A DNA stretch of 64,000 nt from Monocercomonoides exilis PA203 (taxonomy: Eukaryota > Protista > Preaxostyla): positions 744,001 to 808,000 of the forward strand of contig LSRY02000026.1 of NCBI GenBank assembly GCA_001643675.2, in the 5' to 3' direction. The first letter of the stretch is position 1. Each line of letters opens with the position of its first letter. A program made the position numbers and the translations under genes. The notes under the pieces are model-generated. The model was not told the origin of the DNA. It did not search any database and saw nothing but the letters and a program-made list of their open reading frames with translations. Below are positions 6,173 through 26,002 of the stretch, one piece after another.

Positions 6173-7952
6173 GATAATATTGTGATATTTGAGTTCATAT
6201 GTTTTAATGAGTTGAAACATATTTGAAAAACTGATTGAAATGTGTATCAATATATTTTTGAAATAAAACAATGTTGTTTGAAGCAAAAAAAAAAAAGACT
6301 CAAAAACAAGTTTTTTTGAATAATATTCACGATCATATTATATTACAGATGGGTCTAAATTTTTGCAGTTATGAAAAAAACTGTGATTTGTTCCAAACTT
6401 TTTCTCCAACCTTATCATTATGTTTCAACTGTAACAATGCATATAATAACAGAAAAATTCAAAAATTGAAAAAAAAATTATTAGAGAAGAATGGAACGAA
6501 ATTCATAATGCAAAAAATTTTGTCCCAGATTTTCTTTTTCTGATAACCATTATTTGTTTATTATTTTCATATTTTTGCTTTAACAACAACGAAAATTTTC
6601 TTCTTTATAATGAAATCTTAAATTTATCGAAATTTTGAAAAATGCATAAACGAAAATAAAAAACGAAGTGTCAAACGAAGCAAAATAACCAATAACATAA
6701 TAAAGAAAAGTTCAATAAAGTCATATTATAATTCGATCCTATTTTTTTCTTGAAATCAATTATTTAGCCACCCGTATTTCGAACAATTAATAGTTTTTTG
6801 TTATAAAAGAAGAATATAAGCAACTGAATACATTCATTTGAATGCAAAACCTGTTTGCAATGGGGGGAGAAATGTATTTGGATGAAAAGCCTCCAGTTGA
6901 AATTCTAACAGTCATAGATTGGTTCTAATGAATTCAATTCAAAAAAATAAGCATTTGGGTCATTATTTTTCATATCGTAACTTTGTTCGAAGAAAGATCT
7001 TTTTTTAAGTAATTGTGGTATGAAATGAAAAAAGCTTAAAACATATGTTAAAAACACATAGAAAAAGAATCGGAATTGAATTACAAAAAAATAAGTGAGT
7101 TTGAGAACAATTTGAAAATTCCATTATAACATTTATTTATTCAGAAATTTTTAATGTTAAAATTATTTAGCATCACAATACCTTTCAATTCCAGTCATTG
7201 AAAATTATTGATTATTTTTTGAGTTTAATTGAATGATATTGCTTTTTTATATGCTTCGAATCACTTATCATTTGTTTTCAAATGAATTATTGTTTTATTA
7301 AATTTTGATTCGAAATTGAAAGGTTTTTATTTTGGAAGCTGTGTTTTTTTTTAGACTTTATTTATATCATACACGATATATATCATATTTTCACCAATTC
7401 GGGAGGTGACAAGCGAATTAAAATTTGAGGAATTTTGTTGAGGTTGAAATGGAAATAATTTCAAAAAGGAAAAGAGAAATTTTGTGAAAGATAAATGTTA
7501 TTGATAAAATTTTGAGAAGATATGAAAAAAGAAGAGCACAGAAACTGCATAATTTTATTCAATTGTCTTGTTGCTTTTCATCGTTTTTAATTTGTTATTC
7601 GTTTCAAACATTGACATAATTTTATTTATTGAAAAGATAATTATTTTTGAAATATGCAATTCATATATCTTGATGCGAAAAAACATTTGTTTGTGTTTTT
7701 TTTTTGAGATCTTTTTGTTTTTGATAGATTCGATAGATGAACTTGTCAAAAAACAAAAAACATTAAATAAACTTTTGCAATTTCAATTTTTCAATTCCTA
7801 TTTACCAGCGTGCAAGTGAAAATGAAGAAAAAAGATAAAACCTAAAAAAGAAAGTGAGGTAATTTTTGTTAAATCAATGGATGCCAAAAAGAATTTGTCT
7901 TTTTGTGAAGCTTAGTTTTATTCACAAGCACCAGGCCATTTATTGTTCCTAT

Positions 7953-8712
7953 TCAGTCAGATTTATAAACGTATAAAAAATTAAGGAAAAGTCCTCCTCC
8001 ACATTCTTTTGCTGTGCATTTCTGGAATTCACAACCACTGATCCTGACACATGACGAAATTGATTCAGCAAATATTCCTCCTCCAGAACCGTTTTTTACT
8101 GTGCATACATTGAATGAATTGTTCTCAATCTTGATTGAATTAATTGTATGACACATAATTCCTCCCCCAACATAGTTTGCATAGCAGTCGTTGAACCAAC
8201 AAAATTTCACTGAAAGCGTCACCGATGCCTTGTTATACATGTAAATTGCTCCACCATTTGAAGTTCCATCTGAATAAGAAGTTCCTGACCCAGTGGTTTT
8301 TGACCCATTCCACACACACCAAGTGAACGAATTCGCCCCATTGTCTGCTATCTGCTGTCTCGCTGGTTTCGAAGGATTCCCTTCACTCCCGCTGACTGCA
8401 ACATTCTGTGATCGATAGCATCCGACAAACGAGGTGTTCGAGGCAGCCAATGAAGATGAAGGGCTGTTCAGTGAGGGGACAATGCCCCCATCATTCACAT
8501 CCCACACCGATGAAAATGTGCACCCACTCATCAGAAACGAGGTTTGACCCAGCCCTTCAGCCAGATGTGATAATTTTGGTGGATTTGTTGAGATGTTGAA
8601 GAAGGTCAGCTGGGTGAGTGTCACAAGGGGTATCAAAGGCGGTGCCAGAAACGGGGCTGAAGATACACAAAAAGATGAGAAATGAGTCTCACTCACCAAT
8701 ACACTCCCTCCT
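7953..8712 (-). pseudogene. Fragment of a right-handed beta-helix (GGA-motif) family gene; cargo of the TIR element
   Basis: Motifs NGGAI, GGGI, GGGLF and FxxC. Homologous to the 26003 ORF (IVPSLNSPSSSLAASNTSF vs ILPSINTSSTSLSAFNTSF; FTWCVWN vs FEWCEWN). Truncated at both ends. Confidence 0.75.
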
Positions 8713-8730
8713 CTTTCGCTTTCTTCTTCT

Positions 8731-8828
8731 CTTCCTTCTCCATCTCTTCCTTCTCCATCTCTTCCTTCTCCATCTCTTCCTTCTCCATCTCTTCCTTCTC
8801 CATCTCTTCCTTCTCCATCTCTTCCTTC
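8731..8828. repeat. 15-bp tandem repeat (cttccttctccatct) x6.5; reads EKEEM on the minus strand
   Basis: Read directly from the sequence. Confidence 0.95.
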
Positions 8829-10099
8829 ACCTCCTCGCTGTCCTCCTCTCTCTCTTCCTTCATCTCTTCAATGTGATATTCCTTGGTAACCAAAAATATG
8901 CCCAAATCCCTTTTCTTGTCTCTTTCTGCTGCATATGTAATGAATCTCATAAAAAAAATATAACAGATTTTCGCTGTCAGTGCATTTTTATAATTAATAA
9001 TCCTATAAAGCTCTTTCCCATGCTAATTCCGCCATTGACCTTAACTTTCTATCGTTTGATGTCATTTCACTCCCTTGAAGTTTAACGAAAACGCCAGCAA
9101 AAACAATTTTGTTCAAATAAGTGAAAAGTTAAAACAATAAATCACATAAAAAATTGGTCAAATAATATAATTAGTGAAAATATCATACATTTGTTCCTTC
9201 AATCTCACCTTCTTTTGTCAAAGCATCGCTGCATTCTTTGTCTCCTCATCCCTTCCGTCATTTTCAACAAAAACAAAACACACTGCAATCTTCATCCATA
9301 AAGATGTTCTTTTTGATAGTGTTCTTGAGGATATTCCCATCTCCTTTTTTGAATAATTCTTAGTTGAAGTGACTTTCCTCTATTTTTTCACCAAAATCCC
9401 TTTTCTCTTTTTTATTCTTCATGTACTCCCACAATTCGTTTCACCATCTCATTCCCTTCTTTCAGCTCTTCTTCTAATGCTCCAAAAAAAATTCATTCTT
9501 CTTATTCTTCTTGTTTTCCTTCTTCATCTCATTTTCTTTTCCCTATCTTCTGCTTCAACTTCAACTTCTTTTTTTCTTCTCGAATTTTAATCAATTTTCT
9601 TCTTCTGCTGTATCATCAATTTTTCTGCTCTCTCTATCTCTTTTAGCTTTTAAAAAGATTCATCGTAAATGCCTTCCACAGGCATTCATGAAAATTTTCT
9701 TTATTTCATTTTATTTACTCTGTCTCATTCCATTTATCATCCTGCAATTGTCATATCCTGACTTCTTTAATGAATTCAATATCCCCATCTTCTCATATTC
9801 CATGTTCATTCATTGTTGTTGAACATTCTTGCAAATATCCTAATTTCATAAAATATTAATATATGAAAAATTGTAATAAAAAAAATAGAAATACATGCCG
9901 TTATAATGATCGTTCTTCTCAAACTTTTTTCTCCTCCTCTGAATATTGTTCCGTTTTGCCAACAAAACCCATCTGTCTCGTCTTCGTTTCTTTTCTGCCT
10001 CCTCAAAAAAAATCAGCCAAAACCCAATCCTGTATTCTGCTTTCGCTCAAATAACCTTCACAAATTCCATTCTTTTAAAAAAACTGGTAAAGAAGAATA

Positions 10100-11100
10100 T
10101 TCCATCTAATAAACACGTCTCACCCCTTTTCTCTGCATCGCCTTCTTCTTCTCTCCATTTCCCCTCAAAGCAACAACATCACACCACCTCACCCACATCC
10201 CAATCTATCCATTCTCCCTCTCCACAAAAACCAAACAACTCTGCCCACAATCCACCTTCTCCAACTTTCATAACAAACGATTGCAAAATCCCTTCTCCTT
10301 CACTTCCAACATCCCCTTCTCCAATTATCCTTTTCCCAATCAAAAATATAAATGCCTCCAATATTTTGCCTCTCTTTGGTGCAAGACACCCTTTCGTGGT
10401 CAGCCCCTCATCTCGCTCCATCTCATCATCCTCAACACAAAGTGTTGCGTTCGATGTTCCTTCTTCCTGCCTTCCTCCATCTCAGCTTCCATCCCTTGCC
10501 CTGCAAATGAGAAGCGCGACCAAACTGTTTATTCAATAAAAAATTTGAAATATTAAAAAAAAGAAATCTCTCTCATTTTTTTTCTTCTTCAACCCCACTT
10601 TTCTCTCTTATCATGCACACTCTCGCAAAATCTTTTCCCCTTGCCCTGCCTCATATGCCTCCTCCCTCTCTCGGTACATAAAAAAAAAGCATCTTCTCCC
10701 CATTTCTTCTCCATTTCCTTTCCAACTCTCATCCTCCCCTCCAATAAGCATATTCCATTCACTCCACCCTTCTTATCTTCCCTCTCATCCCACCTCCTCC
10801 ACAACAAATTCCATTTCTCCAGCAATAAACACGACATCCACGCCTTCTCAATGACAAAAATCGAAAAAACAATCTCTCAGCGCTTCATCCCAATCTATCC
10901 CCCACACATCCATTTTGCCTCTTAAACCTCACAAAAATACCTCTTTCTCCCCCAAAAAAACATCCTTTTGTCGTTCCATTCCCCTTCAAGACATCCTGCT
11001 TTCCCCTTCAAGACATCCTGCTTCTCTCCAAACTCCATATACCCATCCTCCCTCTCTTCTGACTTGTCCATATGCCCATTCAGCCACAATAAATCGACTT
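10100..11100 (-). pseudogene. Degenerate gene fragment(s), probably from an expanded large-protein family; cargo
   Basis: Purine-rich minus-strand coding-like composition with short broken frames (e.g. GEGGLWAELFGFCGEGEWIDWDVGEVV) and many stops. Confidence 0.4.
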
Positions 11101-11849
11101 GGGCTTTCTTTTCTTTTATCATCCCAAATCTGTCGTGAGCACAATCAAATTGAATCTTATGACAGAAGATTTGACTTGGCCACACGAAGAATGAAAGGCT
11201 TGCATTCGAAAAAGGTGGCAGATGGAGCAGACGAGTTGAATACAGCCCTGAAGCAGAATGAAGACAAAAGCAATATCATTTTTGAAGGAAGAGAGAGTCT
11301 TTCATTTTTGATTGTTGGAAATGATGATGATGAATGGTTTTGTCAAAATAACAGGAAATGGGGTGAATGAAATGAGCTTTATTGTTTGTGTGTGTTCGTT
11401 GAAGAATTTCAATATTAATGTTATTTTCCTCTTTTGCTGCCTGTCTGGGTGTGATGATGTTGTTTGAAATGGACAAAAGAGGTGTTTGTTTGCTGAGAGG
11501 AGGAAGAATGAAAGTGAGGAGAGAGCTCAACGAATCAGAGTTTCGAGGGAAATGGCACAGGAGAAGGGCAGGACAATCGCCTGTTTGTGAAAAAAGACTG
11601 AACAAAAAGGAGTTTATATGGAGAAGAAGAAGTGGAAGGAGGAGTAGAAGAAGAAGAAGAAGATGATGATGATGAAAAAGGTGAAGGTGAAGGTGAATGT
11701 CTGTGTGGATGAGCAGCAGTTGAGATGAGGGCAGGGAAAGGAGGAGAAGAAGAAGGAGAAGAGGAAGAAGGAGCGAAAGAGGAAGGAATGGCAGAGGAGA
11801 AGGTGAACGCAGAAGGAGCAGAAGAAGGAGAAAGAGAAGGAGAAGAGGA

Positions 11850-11930
11850 AGAAGAAGAAGAAGAAGAAGAAGAAGAGAAGAAGAAGAAGAAGAAGAAGAA
11901 GAAGAAGAAGAAGAAGAAGAAGAAGAAGAA
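11850..11930 (+). repeat. (GAA)n microsatellite
   Basis: Read directly from the sequence. Confidence 0.95.
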
Positions 11931-13570
11931 AGAGAAGAGGAAGACGAAGAATAGCAGATTCTGGATGTTCAATTGCTATTTGAAGTGCAGTCGCATTTGG
12001 AATGTCAAACTTTGTTCGGCAGATGAACATTATGGAGCAATGCATGAATATTTAGAAGTGATGAAGAGAAGTTGTTTCTGAAGGTGCTGAGTGTGGAGAG
12101 TGAGAGAGAGAGAGAGAGAATGAAAAGGAAGAGAAGAAAGAGAAGAAGAAGAAGAATATTGTCCAGTATGAATCTAATGGATATGTTTGATTGATAGAAG
12201 TAATTAGAACGAACCAAAGGAATTCAAATATTGTTTCTTTTTCTTCTTCTTCTCTTTCTTCATCAAATTCTTCTTCTTCTCTTCAAATATGTCCAGTATT
12301 GAGTGTGAAAAAATTATGGACTTTTAATTATAATCGTTCTTTTTTTCCTCCTCCTCCTTCTTCTATTAATTCCTCTTCTAATTCTTCTCTTTTTTCTTCT
12401 TCTTCTTCGTCGTCGTCATCATCAACATTATATCCTTTTTCTCCAATTTTTTCTATTAATTCCAATAACAATACTTATTCTAATTATATTTCTTTTCCAT
12501 CTCTTTCTTCTTCTTCATTTTTTTCATATTTTATCAATTGCTTTGAAAAAAACATCTCATTTTCAATATTTTCTCACACGAAATAAATCAAATAAGGATC
12601 GTTCTTAACATTCAAAAAGTCTATTCGCAATAGAGCGAATATCCGAACGCAAGGAGCAGGTTTGCTCCTCAATAATGAGTATTGTTCAAGATTTATGGGC
12701 GGTTTAAGATCTAACTTCGCCAATACTCAAATTCAAAGTTGATCCAGATTGTCCGCAATGAAAATGAAGCAACAACCTGTTACAATAGAACACAGAGACG
12801 GCGATGGAAGTGAATTAGATCAAAATTTAACACTGGTCAAAGTGGAATATTTTAGTGAAAAATTTACCAGGATTTAAGCAAGAAATTTATCATCCGGAAT
12901 GGAAGAGAGTGCACAGCCGAAGATGTCGAACGGCAAGCTGCACATTGTGAAGAGATTTTATCAAGAACAGAAGCTATAAAAATCTGTGAGTTAATTATTG
13001 GAATTAGAGCCACATTGTGCAGCGAGACAATTGTCCAAACAGAAACTATAAAAAATCGAGAGATGTTTAAACAAAATGAAGATATGATATTCTATAGGCT
13101 TTAAAAAAGAATACAACTACACATTATTTTGTTTATTTATTTGGAATAAGAACAACGTATTGAAGCAAGATATCGATATATTAAGAAAGTGCTTGATATC
13201 GCAAGAATTTAAAGAGATAGATCCACAAATTGCAGAGAGATTATTTTGGAGAAAGAATTTCCTATCTAATGAAATTTCGAAACAATATAATAAATATATA
13301 CAATATAGAAGAGATATATTCATATAATGCTGTGGAATTCAAATTTAAACAAAACCAACGAGAAACAACAGAATATTGATAGAATTTGTAAGGAAGAAGA
13401 TCCGCGCATAGCCGCGAGATGTGAATTAATTCAGAAGTGATTATATAGCAATAATAATTTGATTACAATTTGAATATATATAATTAAAATGAGACAAGGC
13501 ATTGTATCGAAATAATTACAATGAACATAATCGTGTTTAATCGTTAGACTAAGATAAACAGAGAGAAAAG

Positions 13571-13701
13571 AGAGAGCCGCGCTTTGCCGCGAGACAGAGA
13601 GAGAAGAGAGAGCCGCGCTTTGCCGCGAGACAGAGAGAGAAGAGAGAGCCGCGCTTTGCCGCGAGACAGAGAGAGAAGAGAGAGCCGGACTTGACCGCGA
13701 G
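13571..13701 (+). repeat. 36-bp tandem repeat x3.5 (agagagccgcgctttgccgcgagacagagagagaag)
   Basis: ccgcgctttg recurs at 13577, 13613 and 13649. Confidence 0.95.
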
Positions 13702-15399
13702 ATTATGATTTGATTAAATAAAAGATGTGCAGAGAATTGAAGCGAGAGAGGGATAAATAGAGAATCTGCTTGATATGAAAAGAAGATTTATTGTGAAAAG
13801 AGCTGCGCAGTTACGCGAGATACCGATAAATACCGTGACGAAATATTTATATTTATATAATGCAAGGATATTTGTAATAATCGATACATATATTACAGCA
13901 ATGTTTTAATAAAAGGATAATTTCATTACAGTTACAAGATAATTATTTGAAATGAAGCTGTGCATATTCGGGAGAGAGTTACAAAGAATCAAACCGAGTT
14001 GGATCTTGAGATAATGAGAAAAGAGAGAGAATAGAAAGTCGTGCTTTACCACGAGATTAAGAGAGGAGAGAGAGACCGCGTTCAATACCAAGACTATGAG
14101 AGGAGAGATAGCAGAGAACCGCGCTTCGCAGCGAGATGATAATAGAGATAGAAATCTCTGAAAATCGATTGGCTTTGCAAAGGAAATACTGACAAGCTGT
14201 ATTACGAAACAATATTAAAACTGAATAAGTGAAATATCATTAATTTATAATTCTAAATGATACGTTTCATTATAAGAGAAATTATCACATAAGGGAAACC
14301 GCTAAATATTACTGGACTGAGAGAAAAAAGAAATTTGTAGATTGTCGCGAGATAATAGTGGAGCAACAAAAAACTGATGATCGAAAGAGTTAATATGAAG
14401 AGAGAACCGAGTTTGCTTTGAGAAAAGGAGAGAAAGAAACTGAGAGAAATGGCGATTTGATAATACTATAAGAAACAGTGCATAATTACGAGATATGGGC
14501 AGATATAGAAACAGCGAAACTTTTCCAGAAGATTGAAGAAGTGAAATCCGCGAAGAATCGCGAGGAGATGATAGAGCAGGTGACTGCGGAAGACCGCGAG
14601 AGGCGGATACAGAAAAAAAAAAGCTGAATAGTGCAGCTGAAATATATCAAAGAAGTCTTCGCATATCTCAGCAAAAATGCCGATAGACGCACTCAGCCAG
14701 ACTTAGAAGAAGCGGGACTATGCACTGAGAGTGTAAAAAGTCGCAGAGACATGTCAAACATTAGCACCGAGAAGACTAGATATTATTGAAGACACCATTG
14801 CTCCGGTGCCCAGCGGAATTATTTGTAAACTATCCTCTTTAAAAAGGAAGAGAAAGATAGAATTGTTTATTTACGAGATTGAACTAGTCCATTATTGAGG
14901 AACATCGGATTGATCTCTAAAGAGGTGAGAAATGATGACTAGAATTTTCCCCCATGAAAAATAATTAGTGTTAGACTGGAGAGGAAAATATATAAGAAGG
15001 AAATCTTTTCAAGCATGGAGAGAATACGTTGGAGCGAAGGACATATCAGCAGTAATATTGAGTAACCCAAATAGTGAAAGTGATTCAGGGAGAGCTCTGC
15101 GAAGATTTTCAATTCTTGAACAAGCAAAGTTCTGGTGATACTGACCCCCTCATTGAAAAAGATGCCAAGTGAATTATGGCAGAATTTATTGGGAACCAAT
15201 CGAATACGTATTTTTCAAGTGGAGAGATCAATAAAGCTGAACGAAAAGTATTCGAGTCTATTAACATTTTCAGAGAATTTGAGACGAATGAGAAGATATT
15301 GATTCTTCTCCTAAACTCACGTTAGAGATATGCCGAGAAGTGGAAAACAATATTGATCAATGCAGGAATTAACAATTTTAACAAAATGTGGAAGACACC

Positions 15400-15900
15400 A
15401 CATTTAGCTCAATAGACACGCAAGCATCACAGAGGAGAGCCCCTATCCTCACAGAAATTTTGTAGCGTTTGAGCCAGCTGAGCTGGAGAGATTGAGAAGG
15501 TAGTGTTCTATATTGAAAGAGAATGCAGCATTAATAGAAGTGCAGATAAAGATAACATTAAGGAAGACAATAAAATCGATATTAACAAACATTCAAACTC
15601 ACTCATCGATACAGAAGAAACGCTCCAACGTGAGTTGGATTTTTCCAGGATTATTTAAAAAGATGAACACGTGCGGTTGAAATTAAGGAAGGTGAGCCTG
15701 CAAATATGCAGAGAATAAAAGAAGAGTTAGAAGCTATTCAAAAAGAGTATGAAATACACGATCATTTGACCGCGCTCTCGATTATACATAAAGTTATAAT
15801 ACACATATCAAAAAGAAAATGTTGAGATTGGAAAGCGAGAAAGATACACGCAAGAGGGGAGCAAGGATCAAGAGTGGACAGAAAATTTAAAACATTTTTC
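15400..15900 (+). pseudogene. Tyrosine recombinase remnant
   Basis: Broken frames QRRAPILT..FVAFEPAELERL, ALIEVQIK and HLTALSIIH align with LTMLFTACRFTELERV, IYLDTRLK and HFTPYSIK of the YR at 30874. Confidence 0.55.
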
Positions 15901-16519
15901 TTGTTCAAGATATGAAATGGATCCTGTTGACGATCGACTTTCAAGAACCCCCTCGTGGAGAAAGAGAAAAGTGGGATATAAATAGAGGAAGGAAGGATAT
16001 GAGAATCGAGAAAGCAAATTCAGAGATAAAAGATAGCATTGAAAAGACATCAGAAGCTGGGGGAGAAGAAGATATGAGAAAAGGAAAGAAGTTAAAGAGA
16101 CTGGACTTATTGAGTTGGGAAGAGAGAAAACAAAGAGAAAGAACTCAATCACAACACAACTTATTCCGATCACTCGAGTGTCGGAGAACATCCATCATAA
16201 TTCCCAGCAGCGGAAGCGAACTGACTGGAAGCAGACACACTGCCTCACAGAGAAAGAAGGGCACAGACCGGAGGAAGAATGGAGAAAGAAGTCAAGGTTA
16301 TATTATAAAGAACTCAAGAGGAACGAATTCCCGGTCGAGAACACCTCGGAAACACCTCAAGATATAAAGGGAGTAGAGACAATGGCCGCACCTTCATCCG
16401 CAGGCTCTCAACACATCTGCCGCACGATGACGTGCTAGGCAGGAGGGTTTAAGATCATTATATATAAATAAATAAATATAAAATTAAGTAAGAATAAATA
16501 TTTAAAAAGGGATTTCAAA

Positions 16520-16608
16520 ACTCATTATTGAGGAGCAAACCTGCTCCTTGCGTTCGGATATTCGCTTTATTGCGAATTGATAGAACGCAGTGAGACTGAA
16601 TTTGCTCC
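16520..16608 (+). other. Internal complementary region (ICR) of the DIRS element at 12623-17272
   Basis: actcattattgaggagc...ttattgcgaat|tgatagaacgcagtgagac is complementary to both termini. Confidence 0.9.
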
Positions 16609-17814
16609 GAAATAATACGAACGTGGATGGAGAGACTCAGAGCGGCTGGGTGCGTAAGAGAGAGAAACAGATTAGGAAGATGAAGAGAAAAAGGGAGAGA
16701 TATAGAAGGATAGAGGAAAAGATCAACCGCCCGAAGATATTAATGTGCACCTAGAACCTTTTTTGAGAAACATGGAAACAAATAAAAAGTTCAAGCATGA
16801 TCCTACTCCTTTATAAGATTATTATTGTTTTTACAGAGAAGAATTGAATATTTAATATGCAGTGTGTGATGATTGGGGTTGCTCTGCTGATGCAGCAGAA
16901 GAGCAGGAGGCAGAGCGCATAACATGCAGTTTTCTTTTCCACGCCTCGCGGAAGCGAGAGTGGTTTTTCTTTCTGCTCCGACCAGAATACTCGCCTCACC
17001 GGATCCCTGCACTGACTGCAGGAGAAAGCTCCGAGGGGCAATGTCCCCTGCCCTCTGGTCTTCGTGACCAAGGCAAAAAGGCGAAAAAGGTGGTGAAGTG
17101 AAGCGGACAATTCAAAATACACTTATTTTTGTCTAAATGTTTTTGTCTATATTTTCATCTCGCCCTTTTTCCCACGTCATTTTGGGAGGGCGAAGTTTTC
17201 ACTTAAACCGCCCATAAATCGTGATCAATACTCATTATTGAGGAGCAAATCCTGTCTCACTGCGTTCTATCAAAAAAAAAAACACAGCTTCCAAAATAAA
17301 AACCTTTCAATTTCGAATCAAAATTTAATAAAACAATAATTCATTTGAAAACAAATGATAAGTGATTCGAAGCATATAAAAAAGCAATATCATTCAATTA
17401 AACTCAAAAAATAATCAATAATTTTCAATGACTGGAATTGAAAGGTATTGTGATGCTAAATAATTTTAACATTAAAAATTTCTGAATAAATAAATGTTAT
17501 AATGGAATTTTCAAATTGTTCTCAAACTCACTTATTTTTTTGTAATTCAATTCCGATTCTTTTTCTATGTGTTTTTAACATATGTTTTAAGCTTTTTTCA
17601 TTTCATACCACAATTACTTAAAAAAAGATCTTTCTTCGAACAAAGTTACGATATGAAAAATAATGACCCATTTAATGAACTTAGAAATTATATTTCAATG
17701 AAAAATTAAATGTTTAAAAATGAAGTCAATTAATTGGCTTAATGATTATAATTATTAAAATAAAAAATGAAAAAGGAAATTGCAAGGGAATCTTCTGCGG
17801 GTAGACATAAACAT

Positions 17815-18071
17815 GGGTGATTCTTTTTGAAGTCATAATTTTTCTTTCAAAATTTTCGAATCGAAAATTTTCATTGAACATTCACAAATGAACACTGAAA
17901 AATGAAATGACTTATTGAAGACGTCATCATCTTTATTTCTGCAAAGACATTGGTTTATGAAACAATTGGGATGTATTTAGCATCTGAATTCAAAAATTTT
18001 TTCTAATGACAAAAAAATTTTTGAAAAATATTACACCCCGAAAAAAGTTATGATTTCAAGAATAATCACCC
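17815..18071. mobile_element. 257-bp MITE with GGGTGA termini, ~29-bp imperfect TIRs and 4-bp TSD ACAT
   Basis: gggtgattctttttgaagtcataa ... ttatgatttcaagaataatcaccc; acat at 17811-17814 and 18072-18075. Confidence 0.85.
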
Positions 18072-18552: not shown

Positions 18553-20187
18553 TGTCAGCAGAATCTCCATAAGGCAATGTTATCATATTTATTCAAACAA
18601 TCAATGAATTTGCTGCAGCGAATTGTGCATATTGTTAATGATGGAGATGTGCTAATGGCTGATGCAAACAACAGCAAAAAATTCAGCATAATTCGAATCA
18701 TGCGTGTGGTGAATGTAGTTTTGCAAAGCAGATTAGTTTTTAAAATTGGAAGCCAGCTGCTATCATTGTAGAAAAAGAGCAAACAGTGCTGGACGAAATT
18801 AAAACAGAATCACTGTCTGGAGCAAGCTTAACCATCTATAAAACGCGTGAACTGGTTTGCCAAAATATTCTTTGAAATGAATTAATAAATATTTCTAAGA
18901 TTGAAAATATTGTTAATGATTTAAAACCAGAAAGCACGCCAGATGTTAATGTTTCTGCTTCCATTTCCTACTATTTCATCAAAAGATATCCCGAGCTGAA
19001 GACTTCAAAGCCAAAAATTGTTGAAGCAAGCATGCTTTCCGTATCACGCCAACAAGTTCTAAAGCCCTTGTATGATATGTTCTATGGATTTCATCAAACA
19101 AATAATTTCAACAATGCCCTTATCTACAATGTGGACGAGTCAACACTCAGGGTTTCCAACAGCTCCAATCGGAATGTTGTTCATCCTGATTATACAAAAC
19201 AAAATTTTGAAAAATCCGCTGGGCGAATGGCGAATTCCATGTTGATTGTAGAGGTTGCAGTTGATGGTCAATCACTTCCTTTTGTGATTCTGTGGTCGAG
19301 TCTCAAACTTTTTGATGACTTGAAACTTCTTCAGTCTTCAAATCTTGAGATTTGGCCGAACAAATGCGGATGGATGGAATCTTCGACGTTCAGAAAATAT
19401 GCGCTAACAATTCTCCTCTCTTCTGTCAAAGAAAGAAGGCAACGCATATCACTCGACGAATCCCACTGCTTGCTTCTAATCAACTCCAACGTTTCTCGAG
19501 CAGACCAAACAATCTGGCGAGAGTTCAGAAAAGAAAATGTGGATGTTGTGACATTCGTCCCTCGCAGCACACACGCCTGCCGTCCACTGGACCGAGGCGT
19601 ATTTGCTGTTCTGAAGTCTGAGATAAGTTCACAGTATGAAGCACTTTCATTTTCGTCTTCAGAAGCGAAGAGTTCATCTCTGGTGGAAGCTCTCCAGCAT
19701 TCAATTCATTAATCGCTATCACCTTCAGTCATCAAAAGAGCTTTCAAATGTGGAGGAATGTTGAAAGACTCGTCTGGGCCAGTTCTGATGAAGCTTCCTC
19801 TATCATCGACTTATCCTCTTCATTCACATAAAATACGATTTGACTTCTACGGTAAAGAAATAACAGGAAAAAACGTGCCAAATGAGTGGAATGACTGTTT
19901 GAAAAAGAAAAGTGAAATGGAAAATGAAAAAGAGAACATTTTGGATTAAGAAAATGATGAAACAACGAATTTCACAAAAAAAGTCGAAAAGAAAGTTTAA
20001 AATACTTCAAGATGAGAACGATATTGCTACAGAATCATCTGATGAAACTGAGAAATGATAAGGTGAAAGAAAAAACATTCGCAGATAAGATTAAAGTTTT
20101 GTATTTTTTTGAATTTTTTATGGAATTTTTCATTTCGAAATATTTGGGAACTAATAAAAAAAAGGGTACTTATTAAAATATGACCCC
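18553..20187 (+). mobile_element. pogo/Fot1-like (DDE_1) transposon pseudogene with a spliceosomal intron at 18855-18899
   Basis: Motifs IYNVDES, GWM, FVPRSTHACRPLDRGVF. Frameshift near 18750, in-frame TAA at 19710-19712, second catalytic D changed to N. The 3' end ...tatgacccc is homologous to the terminus of the 60370 element. Left end not located. Confidence 0.85.
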
Positions 20188-20834: not shown

Positions 20835-23800
20835 TCAGTTATTCCGAGATCTTCTCTTCCTGACTACTACAATTGCAAAAATCACAACAACCACCACAAT
20901 CACCACAACCACAATTGGAACAACAATAGCAACCACAGTTCCTGCACTTGACTTCTTCTTCTTTTCTGGTTCAGGCTCATCTTTCGGTTCTTTGTGCTTT
21001 AGGTATTTCTCATACACATCTTCAAGATTGTCACCTTCTTTTTTTGCTCCCACAATCCATCCTTTATTACCATCGTTGTAATCCTTCGCAAACTCAAAGG
21101 AGTCTTTCTGTTGGCTGAACTTATCAAAGTCTTCCGCAATGATGCACAAAGATGCCACAGATGAATCTTTCCCTTTGTTGTCACCTAACTCAAGTTTGCC
21201 TTCACCTGGAAGTTTCAAATTATCAACAGCATCTTTCACTTCAATGAGAATAGCTCCTGCCTTTCCACTTGCTGCTTCGCACGATTTGAATGAACATTTC
21301 TTTTCTCGTCCCATTTCCACTTTTGAATTATCATCTTCCATCTTGATCAATACACCTGCGCATAATCCGTTCGCTGATTTCACTTCTTTCATGGTCAGCC
21401 CTTCTATTTGAACACTCGAAGCTTTTTCAACTTCATCTTCAATGCTAATAGCTGCTCCATCTGTCACACTCACTTTATTGATCTCAACTGTATCAAGTTT
21501 GACTGAAGAAGCACCATCAATCACAAACAATGATTCCAGGAATTTCACTTCATTATCTCCCTTGCATTCGATATCTTTCATTGAAAGTACTCCTTCAGTC
21601 ACTTTCACAAGATGGATTTTAGCCATTTCTTCATCATTTCTTGGTGCATCTGGCTCTGGTCTCACAAATTTGCAGTTCACGAAACTCAGCTTAGCATCTG
21701 CACCGCCTGCAACAATCAGTGAGGATGTGTCAGTATTTGATTTCTCAGGTGCATCCAATGACAATGGGAACAAGAAGGAAATTCCTCTGAACTCAACTTC
21801 ACTCTTGCATGTGAACAAATGACTTTCTGATTCAACATTGCAATCAAGAGTAACTTCTGTCTCAATTTCTTTTTCTGTTTCTTCTCCATTTGTTTTGGTT
21901 ACACCAACAATCGTTATCAATGAAAATTTGTCAAATGAAACAGCTTCAGCTTTGATTGGTTCATTCGTTTTGATGATGTTGATCTTGAAGTTTTCTCCTC
22001 CAACACCAACTCCAAACAATTTGTATGCTGAATCCAGTTTTTTCTTTGGCGTTTCATAGCTCAATCCATCTTGGCTATCATCTGTTGCTCCTTCACTGAC
22101 ATATACATTTGTGTTCGGATCAAAATACACAACTGTGAAATCAACTTCATTTTCATTATCTGCTCCTTTTGCAATAACAAAGCATTTATTTGTTCCTTTC
22201 TTGTAGTTGGCTGCAAAGCTTTGCTTCATCGCTTTTGCAATGTCTCTATGAATGTTTGCTGACACATCCAAATATAATGCTGTGTTCTTTTCAGCATTCG
22301 ATTTTTGATCTGCCTCTCCTGTCTTGCACTCTGAAAATACTAAATTATCTCCTGTTTCTGGCCATGTCAGTTTATCTGCTTTTGTTATTCCTGTCATTTC
22401 CAGACATATTGCTCCTGCTTTCCCTTTTGAACATGTGCATTTTTCAAATGTTGTTTTCCCAGTGTTTCCAATGGAGAATGTGCTTTCTGCATGTTCGCTC
22501 TTCACATAAAGTGCTCCACATGTTTCTGTTGATATATCTTCCGATTTGCATTCTGTGAATGTGCAATTATCTAATGTGACCTCGACTTTATTTGTACTTG
22601 TGATTTTCATTACAGCACTTCCCTTAGATGTGATCTTCTTCAGATTCAATGATGTCAATGAAACAGCCGTGACTGCTGTTGTTGTTCCATCAACCAAAAA
22701 TGGTGCTTCTGAAAATTTCACTTCGTTCTCCGAAGTGCATTCGATCTTATTCATTGTCAATGTTCCTGCACTCACTTTCACAAGATGAGATTTCACTTCT
22801 TCCTCTTCATTTGAAAGCATCCCACCTGAATGAGCAGCTGCAGTTGGTCTCTTAAAATCACAATTGTCAATTGTTAGAGATGTTGATTCTGTATCAGCAT
22901 GAATCAAGGCATATGTGCTTGAACTATCTTTCTGTTCATTTGCGACTAGTTCAGATGTTGATTTGAAATCAAACACCAAATTCTTAAATGTTACAATATT
23001 CTTACATGTGAACAGATCGCTTTCAGAAATATTGCTGCAATCAATCTCTACTTTTGTGTCAGCTTCGTCAGCAGTTTCCTCTGCTTCTTCCACTCCTTCT
23101 ATTGTAATTCCTGTCTCTTTTGATAATGTGACAGCGTCCGCTGTAACTTCTTGGCCAGATTCTTCTCCTTTTTTTAATATTTTGATGGAAAATTCTCCTG
23201 GACCTTTTGATTTATCTAATAATTCATAAGCTTTTTCAATTTTTCCAAATGGTTTTTCTTTTGTTCCATCAGCTGTGCTATCATCTCCTCCACTTTTAAC
23301 ATATGCCTCATGTGGATCAAAATATATTGCAGTGAAATCAATATCTTCACCACTTGTTCCCTTTGCTGCAACAAACCGGTCATTTGTTCCTTCCACATAA
23401 TATTTGGCAAATTTCTCTTTCATTGAATTAGCAATTTCCTTGAACTTATCGTCAGACACTTCCAAATACAAAAACGTCTGTTTATCTGATCCAGCTTTGC
23501 ACCCATTAACTGTCAAGTTTTCTTCCGCAGGCCATGTCAGTTTTTCTGCACTATCAATTTTCGGCATCTTCAGATATATCCCACCTGATTTCCCATTGGC
23601 ACATTCACACGAAGAAAATGTTGTTTTTGCACCTGAGAATCGTGAATTCTCTGAAATATCAAATTTACTATCTGTTCCATCACTTTCAACATACAACGCT
23701 CCACTTGTGGCATTAGTCTCTACTGTTGATTTGCAATTGATAAATGTGCATCCATGGACATTGACTTCTATCTTCTCACTTGTTTTTCCCACAACCTTCA

Positions 23801-24563
23801 CAACTGCACTTGCACTCGACTCGATGTTCTTAAATGTTGATGCTATAAATGTCACATTTGTTGCATTGTCAAACAAAAACGGAGTTGTTGAAAACTTTGC
23901 TGTGTTGCTATCATCACTGAAAAAGACTGCTTCCATGTTAAATTCACCTGCATCTACTTTCACCAGATGAATATTGGCTGTTTCTGTTCCTGTTGGACGA
24001 ACAAATTGGCAAGTGCTAATTGTTAGATTGGGTGACAGTTTGTTTGTATCTGTTGTCATGGAAGAAAGATCAGACAACACTGGAGTTGATACCTCTGAGT
24101 TTGCAACCAAACGAATAATAGCCAATGTGCTTTCATCACTCGATGCATTACCAAGTGATAACGGATAAATAAACTTCAGATACTTGAAAGTCACATTTTG
24201 CTTGCAAGTGAACAGATCCTTGCTTGTATCACTGTCATCAGTAAGATATGTGCAGGATATATCCACTAACTCAGGAGTCCCATTTCCACCATTTTGTTTT
24301 CCATGGATCATTAATGGTTTGTCTTTATCAAATGTATTCACTCCTGCAACTAATGCAGGTTGACCATCTTCTTGCTTTAGAATTGTAATGCTCCATTGTT
24401 CTGCACTTTGATCATTAAGCTTTGTCAATGCATCACTTATCTTTCCAACAGTTTGAGTTTCAGTTCCTTCAGTGTTATTTGCTCCACTTTTAACGAACAC
24501 TTCTTTGACATCTTCTGAATATATTGAAAGCACAACCTGCAAAAATACAAATTTCAGAAACAT
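20835..24563 (-). CDS. Type I membrane surface protein with three ~400-aa parallel beta-helix-like repeats (adhesin-like)
   Basis: Hydrophobic N-terminus. Three units begin VFVKSG / AYVKSGGDD..DG...P / VYVSEG..DG...P and contain LFTCK, HLVKV, GALYV and GKxGxI. C-terminal TM (VVAIVVPIVVVVIV...) followed by RKRR. The start may instead be spliced at ttgcag near 24537. Confidence 0.85.
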   Translation of the reverse strand: MFLKFVFLQVVLSIYSEDVKEVFVKSGANNTEGTETQTVGKISDALTKLNDQSAEQWSITILKQEDGQPALVAGVNTFDKDKPLMIHGKQNGGNGTPELVDISCTYLTDDSDTSKDLFTCKQNVTFKYLKFIYPLSLGNASSDESTLAIIRLVANSEVSTPVLSDLSSMTTDTNKLSPNLTISTCQFVRPTGTETANIHLVKVDAGEFNMEAVFFSDDSNTAKFSTTPFLFDNATNVTFIASTFKNIESSASAVVKVVGKTSEKIEVNVHGCTFINCKSTVETNATSGALYVESDGTDSKFDISENSRFSGAKTTFSSCECANGKSGGIYLKMPKIDSAEKLTWPAEENLTVNGCKAGSDKQTFLYLEVSDDKFKEIANSMKEKFAKYYVEGTNDRFVAAKGTSGEDIDFTAIYFDPHEAYVKSGGDDSTADGTKEKPFGKIEKAYELLDKSKGPGEFSIKILKKGEESGQEVTADAVTLSKETGITIEGVEEAEETADEADTKVEIDCSNISESDLFTCKNIVTFKNLVFDFKSTSELVANEQKDSSSTYALIHADTESTSLTIDNCDFKRPTAAAHSGGMLSNEEEEVKSHLVKVSAGTLTMNKIECTSENEVKFSEAPFLVDGTTTAVTAVSLTSLNLKKITSKGSAVMKITSTNKVEVTLDNCTFTECKSEDISTETCGALYVKSEHAESTFSIGNTGKTTFEKCTCSKGKAGAICLEMTGITKADKLTWPETGDNLVFSECKTGEADQKSNAEKNTALYLDVSANIHRDIAKAMKQSFAANYKKGTNKCFVIAKGADNENEVDFTVVYFDPNTNVYVSEGATDDSQDGLSYETPKKKLDSAYKLFGVGVGGENFKINIIKTNEPIKAEAVSFDKFSLITIVGVTKTNGEETEKEIETEVTLDCNVESESHLFTCKSEVEFRGISFLFPLSLDAPEKSNTDTSSLIVAGGADAKLSFVNCKFVRPEPDAPRNDEEMAKIHLVKVTEGVLSMKDIECKGDNEVKFLESLFVIDGASSVKLDTVEINKVSVTDGAAISIEDEVEKASSVQIEGLTMKEVKSANGLCAGVLIKMEDDNSKVEMGREKKCSFKSCEAASGKAGAILIEVKDAVDNLKLPGEGKLELGDNKGKDSSVASLCIIAEDFDKFSQQKDSFEFAKDYNDGNKGWIVGAKKEGDNLEDVYEKYLKHKEPKDEPEPEKKKKSSAGTVVAIVVPIVVVVIVVVVVIFAIVVVRKRRSRNN

Positions 24564-26002
24564 TTTCAATTGATGTTCTTTTCTCAATTCAATCAAAGAT
24601 CTACAGACACATTAATTGCACTTTCATTATTGTTGTTTATGGTTTGTAACATATTTTGTATTTTTTGTTATTTTTCGAATTTTCATTATTTTTAATTCCA
24701 TATACAGTTTCAATGAGTGTGTTCATATTTATTCCTCATTGTGATGTTTTTTTTAAAATTATTAATAATCACCGAAAGTCATTGTTTCATTTTTTGTCCG
24801 ATTATTATTTGCACAGATTTGTTCGTGTTCAAAACACTGTGCTTGACATGTAAAATTATATGCGGCATTCTTGAAATAAAATATTCCTCAGAAAGTGTTT
24901 TTGATTCAAATGAGTTCTGCATTTAACTGTATTTTTTGATACGAAATGAATAAATTCAAATTATGAAAATAAATGAAACAAATATTGAGTTTGAAGTGTT
25001 GATTTTAATGAATTGATTTCATTTTTGGAAAATTAAGTTTTCACGAAAATCGAGAAAGCAATAAAAAAATAAAAGAATGGATATTATTTTTCTTTGTTGA
25101 GTCAAAATTTTTATTGTTGAAGTGTTTGTTTTAAGTATTGTTTGAAATATTGTGTGTGACCATTTATTCCTTGTTCAAATGTTAAAGTTTTGCATGTATC
25201 ACATAATTCATTCATTGATTTTCTTAAAAGAATCCATTTGATGCAATGCAGATTGAATCAAATTATTCAAATTGAAAAAATAATTCAAAATTTTGGGGGT
25301 TATTCAAAATAACCCCTGTTAATTTGAATTGACTTGCTTATTTTTAAAATCTTCATCCTATTTTGAATTGAATGTTCAAAACATGAAAATTGATAACATT
25401 AAATAATTTGCATAAAAGATTGATACAAAATACTAAAGTATATTTTTATTTTCTTTTTGAAAAAACTTTGATCTTTCAATTATCTTCTTCGAAAAAATCG
25501 AATAATTTGATCATTCGTTTTAAATGCTATTCCAACTTATGTTATCGAAAACGTGAGTTATATAATGCGAGTTTGAATGATTGTTGCTTTTGAAAATTCA
25601 TTTTTCCCAATATACAAATCATAAAAGCTTCATCAAATTCTTTGTTTATTTCTTCGAATTGCAAACTGTTTCTTTAATACTATAGCACCAACGATAACTT
25701 CTGTGCCATTTTGTTCAGCACTCATAAGGTAATTACTGCTTTTCCCGTTTCAAGCAATAGCTATTTTCAAACAATATTGTTTTTCATTTTTCGCTTTGTA
25801 GAAAAATAATGTTAAAAATCATTAACAAGAAATATTTAAAACACTGAATGTTTAAAAGTATGTACGTTTCTTTTTCAAGATTTCGTTTTAAATATAGATC
25901 ATTTAATATTTTTTTCGAAAATTTCTTTTTCGATATTTTTCTTCTAATTTATCCTATTTCACAATTTTCTTTCGTGCCAAAAGCACAGAAAGCCTTTCAT
26001 AT

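Follow-up and report, generated by a model that had tools for sequence, protein, structure and literature searches.

A probable Sola2-like family of non-autonomous DNA transposons carrying one segment of a host gene family in Monocercomonoides exilis PA203

Background

Pack-TYPE transposons are defined as non-autonomous elements with terminal inverted repeats (TIRs), a target duplication and captured coding DNA (PMC8903248). DNA transposons that carry gene fragments were found described mainly in plants, and the literature searched yielded none of the Sola2 type and none from an oxymonad. The present study describes a 10.7-kb element with long inverted arms and host gene DNA between them, located in a stretch of 64,000 nucleotides from the oxymonad Monocercomonoides exilis PA203 (contig LSRY02000026.1, positions 744,001 to 808,000 of the forward strand). 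The whole stretch is called the window, and all positions without a contig or locus name refer to it.

Galileo of Drosophila belongs to the P superfamily, makes 7-bp duplications and has long TIRs, and the two arms of one copy are much more alike than the arms of different copies. Galileo is not known to carry host gene cargo. For Sola2 elements, 5'-GRG is said to be the general terminus. The Sola2 elements of dictyostelids show 4-bp AWWT target duplications (ATAT, AAAT and ATTT) and inverted repeats of 12-22 bp, and the element of D. fasciculatum begins GAGCATTTATTTTC (PMC3627910).

The transposon family and its copies

Searches were made on the M. exilis PA203 assembly of 82,301,135 bases in 101 contigs, in which the window is C21:744001-808000. 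C-numbers denote contigs, L-numbers denote extracted loci, and the copy in the window was labelled WIN. Analysis of the window element showed perfect inverted arms at 6956-7352 and 17274-17670, which were 397 nt long, 100% complementary and 9921 nt apart. The 5' end of the element was GGGTCATTATTTTTC at 6957 and the 3' end was GACCC at 17669, giving GGG...CCC termini. The ATTT at 6953-6956 and at 17670-17673 formed a flanking 4-bp direct duplication, and the inverted repeat reached 1 base into it, with T6956 pairing with A17670. Domain searches found no transposase domain in any interior open reading frame (ORF) of the element. An earlier note, made from the sequence of the window, had reported two reverse-complement arms of about 396 bp with ATTT flanks and GGG ends around an interior without transposase, and all of these features were confirmed.

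The window arm, used as a genome query, gave 41 scored matches (72 candidates) that were laid out as plus and minus pairs. The 36-nt terminus occurred 59 times in the genome at no more than 3 mismatches, with 32 of these exact, and was absent from the reversed control. At least 23 inverted terminus pairs were present, each spanning 2.2-10.7 kb, which is above the size of MITEs (miniature inverted-repeat transposable elements, under about 800 bp). Perfect 4-bp direct duplications flanked 11 of the 12 evaluable copies, with ATAT in 7, ATTT in 3 and AGTT in 1. Since ATTT and AGTT are non-palindromic, they are true duplications and not a part of the inverted repeat. Among the checks that the earlier note proposed was whether the arms recur genome-wide in paired copies with 4-bp duplications, and not only as short MITEs, and they do. 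Another was a search for a copy encoding a transposase; 15 family copies were extracted in full and 16 were covered by domain searches of open frames, and a transposase was found in none of the 16.

The terminal 60 nt were 92-99% conserved across elements and most of the remaining arm was 72-86% conserved. Whole arms of different elements were about 72% alike (74-82% by BLAST for most copies). The copies followed a common plan of one arm, a backbone of about 590 bp, the cargo, a second backbone block and the other arm. The first backbone (7353-7940 in the window) had 25 genomic matches, and those that could be placed fell within or next to elements of the family. The second backbone block was found only in family copies, including the 2.2-kb copy L034, which has no cargo. 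A different stretch, at 11835-12623 in the window, replaced the usual second backbone block in the window, C46 and C91 copies.

The captured host segment

The window cargo (7940-11690) was one segment collinear with loci on C42 and C71 that lack such arms, at 78-89% identity, and homology to loci without TIRs began at 7935-7988. In protein comparisons, the cargo and the 5' part of long open frames in a beta-rich host gene family were 71-83% identical. At the host loci, the EKEEM repeat (about 8700-8950) likewise lay upstream of the N-terminal block of the gene, as did the ~3 kb that follow it, and positions 10000-11840 alone gave 565 candidate matches that adjoined members of the beta-rich family. 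The coding block of the cargo had more than 2100 candidate genomic matches, of which 150 were scored at E<1e-82, with open frames of up to 4494 aa. The collinearity with host loci shows that the beta-helix, EKEEM and other decayed pieces are one contiguous host segment. The interior had been described in the earlier note as a patchwork of fragments from an expanded host gene family. The expanded family was borne out and the beta-helix and EKEEM sequences are present, but they are not separate fragments.

In most copies, the cargo shared one end point within the gene, near residue 354 of the L055 frame. It always faced the same backbone block, and its position and orientation were the same in most copies. 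The shared truncation point and junction point to a single capture in the family ancestor, followed by inheritance. All cargo frames were truncated, and a start codon was present in none of them.

Searches of the cargo and host beta-rich protein against Pfam and PDB sequences, including a PDB profile search, gave no match. From an alignment of the host protein with 10 rows, AlphaFold produced a poor model (mean predicted local distance difference test score, pLDDT, 45.9). Foldseek with this model returned nothing significant, and its best non-significant rows were right-handed beta-helices. A beta-helix fold for the beta-rich family is therefore a plausible guess, and the fold named in the earlier note is only weakly suggested.

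The loci of the beta-rich family outside the elements (L047/L048, L050/L051, L052/L053 and L061/L062, on C42 and C71) were large inverted duplications. Their arms were at least 3.7-4.4 kb long, 99.2-99.7% identical and 5-13 kb apart, and C42 was packed with them.

Transport of the cargo and gene conversion

Three siblings, L039 (C27), L041 (C15) and L042 (C7), had arms that were 95-99.5% alike and an ATAT duplication of their own each, and most 100-bp windows along their length were 96-100% identical. Near-identity at three loci indicates that they arose by recent transposition, with the cargo in place before they moved. The coding block of the same three copies was only 74-88% identical, with synonymous differences of 25-30%. 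At the sites where the siblings differed, both alleles were found among 7 distinct host copies at 56-65% of sites, compared with 12% for random mutation (p about 1e-18). The window copy and the C46 copy were 95-99% alike over 7962-8210 compared with 77-93% over 8211-8760, and over the latter stretch other copies reached 88-98% and were usually as close or closer. Based on these sequence comparisons, the coding part of the cargo appears to have been overwritten repeatedly by gene conversion from host paralogs.

The ratio of nonsynonymous to synonymous substitution rates (dN/dS) of the cargo was 0.33, compared with 0.30 between host copies. The frame was open across the cargo block in 11 of the 14 copies, and L031 had a stop and a frameshift. 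Ectopic conversion from paralogs accounts for this dN/dS and the open frames, and for a star-like tree of the cargo block, without selection on the cargo.

Homogenisation of the arms

The two arms within one element were 96-100% identical in 14 of the 15 copies with two readable arms, and the exception was the decayed C17 copy (80%). Copy correction between the arms must act, because cut-and-paste movement leaves arm identity un-reset. Both arms of the window copy had a derived stretch of about 90 nt in common, and in the C46 copy (L031) an identical rearranged 16-mer replaced the normal terminus in both arms. The inverted repeat of the C80 copy (L040) extended 300 bp past the termini into the flanks and the duplication was erased, while the arms of the C47 copy were enlarged to 932 bp. 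In the young siblings (L039, L041 and L042), the arms differed by 1-4% and the interior by 6-7%. Given copy correction between arms, perfect arms give no date of insertion.

Both ends of L031 (306-340 and 4316-4350) had GCAAGAATTTTGACCC instead of GGGTCATTATTTTTC, which resembles an inverted terminus, and 15 nt more of the flank was shared. The GCAAGAATTTTGACCC ends may be a trace of hairpin-type end processing.

Candidate mobiliser

A looser terminal motif, GGGTSATNNTTTTTNNNNTCRTAA, had 727 occurrences in the genome, including the MITE at 17815-18071, and 0 in the control. The subtype GGGTGATTTTTTTTGATATCATAA had 211 occurrences, which formed pairs that spanned about 5-7 kb or about 20 kb, and it agreed with the terminus of the window family in 20 of 24 positions. 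Searching the genome for the UCH domain located open frames with this domain, ~1077-1184 aa long, within four of the ~20-kb pairs with GGGTGATTTTTTTTGA[T/C]ATCATAA termini (C1:1192419-1212177, C1:1577371-1596864, C24:891483-913456 and C8:597790-619980). Judged from the sequence of the termini, this ~20-kb element family is the likely mobiliser of the window family.

UCH-domain matches were also present in uninterrupted frames of 4,000-10,690 codons (C18:971861-973780, C69:1943494-1944951 and others), which point to giant proteins in the genome.

The window copy, its sister and nested insertions

The features of the window element and the adjoining MITE are collected in Table 1. The closest relative of the window copy was the 4.0-kb C46 copy (L031), with a backbone 95% and arms about 92% identical to it. 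GAA simple repeats at about 11820-11950 overlapped the right subterminal region of the window element.

Table 1. Features of the 10.7-kb element and the adjoining MITE (positions in the window)
Feature	Position	Strand	Remarks
Left target-site duplication, ATTT	6953..6956	.	Same 4 bases at 17670-17673
Left TIR, begins GGGTCATTATTTTTCATATCGTAACTTTGTTCGAAG	6957..7352	+	100% complementary to right arm
Subterminal backbone, family-specific, not host-derived	7353..7940	.	25 genomic matches; 95% identity with C46 copy
Cargo: truncated 248-codon open frame, conserved N-terminal block of the beta-rich host gene family	7953..8699	-	
Cargo, continued: EKEEM/GRDGE low-complexity repeat and ~3 kb of gene-upstream sequence	8700..11690	-	Collinear with C42 and C71 loci
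Right subterminal region, subfamily-specific	11835..12623	.	Full-length matches only in C46 and C91 copies
Nested DIRS-like non-coding mobile element in inner edge of right arm	12624..17273	+	Missing from L031
Right TIR	17274..17669	-	100% complementary to left arm
Right target-site duplication, ATTT	17670..17673	.	
Neighbour MITE, 257 bp, GGGTGATTCTTTTTGAAGTCATAA...CCC, outside the element	17815..18071	+	ACAT on both flanks

The nested insertion of 4650 bp had entered the original right arm a few bases in from its inner edge, and L031 is free of it at exactly the 12624-17273 position. It recurred in the genome as a discrete repeat with the same boundaries (375 candidates), for example at C35:114789-119457 with 97% identity. 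It had end repeats and an internal complementary repeat, with 12620-12721 pairing with 17189-17249 and with the internal 16516-16580. No Pfam domain was present in any open piece of 12624-17273, including the reverse transcriptase and tyrosine recombinase of DIRS elements. The nested DIRS of the earlier note thus stands as a discrete insertion, but one that is non-coding and only DIRS-like.

Short Logan contigs from three of four DNA runs of one sample and one RNA run were compared over 12001-18000. Contigs of two public runs crossed from the right terminus into the flank (17644-17866), and the nested element was at many times single-copy depth. One contig that joined 12623 to 17279 via AT was considered as an empty-site allele of the window locus and was rejected. 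It fits the C46 copy better, because C46 has AT there and the left arm of the window copy is without it.

Other nested elements were found in family copies. The 10.1-kb copy on C36 contained a separate element of about 4.6 kb (L043:1741-6327) with 669-bp inverted repeats (99.6%) and ATATGGTATATC ends, which encoded a 635-aa frame with a D5-type primase-helicase domain (DUF5906 3e-21, VapE-like 2e-9). This helicase ORF was considered as the transposase of the family and was rejected, since it is part of another, nested element whose ends are ATATGG. The C80 copy contained a nested Merlin-type insertion (L040:1118-3117) with GGCATAGG ends, identical arms of 524 bp and an 8-bp duplication, GATGTTTA.

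Comparison with known systems and alternative explanations

The elements are probably a family of about 25 non-autonomous, cut-and-paste DNA transposons of a Sola2-like kind, in which a single inherited capture of host DNA was later altered by gene conversion. Each full element would have two TIRs of 400-930 bp, about 0.5 kb of family-specific backbone beside each, and one captured host segment made up of the 5' ~250-350 codons of a beta-rich gene and up to 3 kb of DNA upstream. The capture would have taken place once, in the family ancestor, and the cargo would then have been carried to new sites, with each insertion duplicating 4 bp of an A-W-W-T target. Mobilisation would occur in trans, by a transposase predicted in the ~20-kb elements with 20 of 24 matching terminal bases. 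Intra-element copy correction would keep the two arms nearly identical, and the coding cargo would be overwritten repeatedly by ectopic gene conversion, with the more than 2000 paralogs in the genome as its source. The window copy would represent an older lineage that kept or regained the long upstream cargo and later received the DIRS-like insertion in its right arm.

As in Pack-TYPE elements, the family is non-autonomous and of class II, with TIRs, a target duplication and coding-gene DNA between the TIRs within an element-specific backbone. The likeness to plant Pack-MULE and Pack-CACTA (PMC8903248, PMC6379663) lies in transduplication, by which captured gene DNA is copied to new loci. However, the host is an oxymonad and not a plant, the superfamily is Sola2-like, and there is one inherited cargo instead of many different captures. 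In M. exilis there is also a continuing exchange of sequence between the cargo and the family of more than 2000 copies to which it belongs. With duplications of 4 bp, the elements are unlike Pack-MULEs, which have duplications of 9-11 bp and Mutator-type ends. The concerted evolution of the long arms resembles that of Galileo; unlike Galileo, the M. exilis family holds host cargo.

The family shares AT-rich AWWT duplications with Sola2 (Bao, Jurka and Kapitonov 2009; Bao and Jurka 2013, PMC3627910), although a 2-bp reading of the duplication is possible. In both, 5'-GRG ends are followed by CATT..ATTTT, and nothing but the ends is common to the non-autonomous derivatives and the large (10-20 kb) autonomous elements, the partner here being presumed. 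The family differs in its inverted repeats of 400-930 bp, compared with 12-22 bp in dictyostelid Sola2, and in encoding no transposase. The Sola-type features pointed out in the earlier note, namely the 4-bp duplications and GGG ends, fit, and AWWT is the published Sola2 duplication (PMC3627910). Its suggestion that the elements may be an undescribed family was too strong, as they look like a Sola2-type non-autonomous family.

Several observations count against the explanation of a Sola2-like family with a single capture. L035 (the C91 copy) keeps a longer gene piece, to about residue 568, and the window copy has 1.8 kb of host-like cargo (10011-11835) that is missing from its closest sister; either could mean a second acquisition. 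The tree of the cargo block was star-like with element and host copies interleaved, and a single element clade was neither shown nor rejected (approximately unbiased test, p-AU 0.09). These points, together with elements that have host coding DNA yet no transposase and middles that vary between copies, would suit the proposal of the earlier note, in which a Pack-type family is actively engaged in repeated capture and shuffling of different pieces from host surface-protein genes and the window copy would have several independent acquisitions. This proposal is unlikely given that the window cargo is one segment collinear with host loci, that truncation point, junction and orientation to the asymmetric backbone are the same in most copies, and that the near-identical siblings already hold the cargo. 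Conversion explains the interleaving, and the other identifiable variable parts are nested elements (DIRS-like, Merlin-type and the helicase element). One capture is preferred to repeated shuffling, with the later differences attributed to conversion, internal deletions and nested elements, and the extra 1.8 kb of the window copy is possibly explained by ectopic gene conversion. Alternatively, selection might maintain the cargo, for instance as a mobile cassette from which members of the surface-protein family are seeded or diversified, and the frame that is open in 11 of 14 copies, the dN/dS of 0.33, the exchange of sequence with host paralogs and the inclusion of ~3 kb of upstream DNA are in line with this. 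Selection on the cargo is nonetheless improbable. Conversion from selected host genes yields low dN/dS and open frames anyway, the frames are all truncated without a start codon, L031 has a stop and a frameshift, and cargo-less (L034) and partly deleted copies exist. It is also a quite speculative and improbable idea that the transposon-borne gene starts are mobile cassettes which trade tracts with expressed beta-rich genes by conversion and seed new gene starts; if true, this would be a cassette system comparable in logic to silent-cassette antigenic variation.

Regarding the superfamily, the link between the families, the transposase and the superfamily itself are drawn from 24 nt of terminal similarity and the duplication pattern. 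All the duplications conform to A-N-W-T, in which the outermost A and T can be assigned to the repeat, and the ends are also readable as TGGG...CCCA with a 2-bp duplication; both readings predict an identical empty site. A superfamily other than Sola2 with such ends, or an unrelated mobilising transposase, would agree with this and with published Sola2 inverted repeats being 12-22 bp and not 400 bp. It is rather unlikely, however, as the AWWT duplications (ATAT, AAAT and ATTT) are exactly those published for dictyostelid Sola2, the D. fasciculatum start GAGCATTTATTTTC is much like GGGTCATTATTTTTC, and a large open frame lies within the 20-kb elements of the same terminal motif. The 100% identity of the window arms, in an assembly from Nanopore reads polished with short reads, and the many large near-perfect inverted duplications of this genome (such as those on C42 and C71, with arms of at least 3.7 kb and 99.2-99.7% identity) raise the question of an assembly artefact or a local palindrome in place of a transposon. 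Short-read polishing may slightly inflate the identity between arms, and no excision or insertion polymorphism was seen in the short Logan contigs, which cannot show empty-site alleles or span the structure. An artefact or palindrome is still very improbable, since at least 23 pairs with these termini lie at unrelated loci and have 4-bp direct duplications of their own, the non-palindromic ATTT and AGTT cannot belong to an inverted repeat, and contigs from separate runs of one sample contain the junction of terminus and flank.

For a Sola2-like family with a single capture, the sibling copies that are near-identical except in the captured coding block offer a natural experiment on the speed of ectopic conversion, and low dN/dS and open frames in such transposon cargo need not mean function. 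The Nanopore assembly of M. exilis PA203 contains about 46% repeats, with about 35% of the assembly unclassified and 4.5% DNA transposons (PMC8767320). Families like the window element, together with the carried gene family, account for part of these repeats.

Surroundings of the family copies

A composite transposon, with two MITEs around host DNA, was considered for the window element and rejected because the arms carry the terminus at the outer end only. A second MITE of the same terminal type as the neighbour MITE adjoined the element at 18120-~18372 and was inverted and decayed.

Family copies were often located in transposon-rich DNA. Transposase fragments of pogo-like (DDE_1) and Tc1-like (DDE_3) type, at 19032-19712 in the window, L015:2578-3213 and L018:1844-2386, adjoined family copies, and the copy at C7:1801970 was located beside or inside a pogo-like gene. 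L039 (C27:138720-148108) had three arms (+, +, -), with a tandem duplication of the unit of arm plus interior, a pattern suggestive of unequal exchange or of aberrant transposition. A minus-strand frame of 1253 aa was present at 20835-24596 of the window, and its C-terminus gave just a weak Psg1-like match below threshold.

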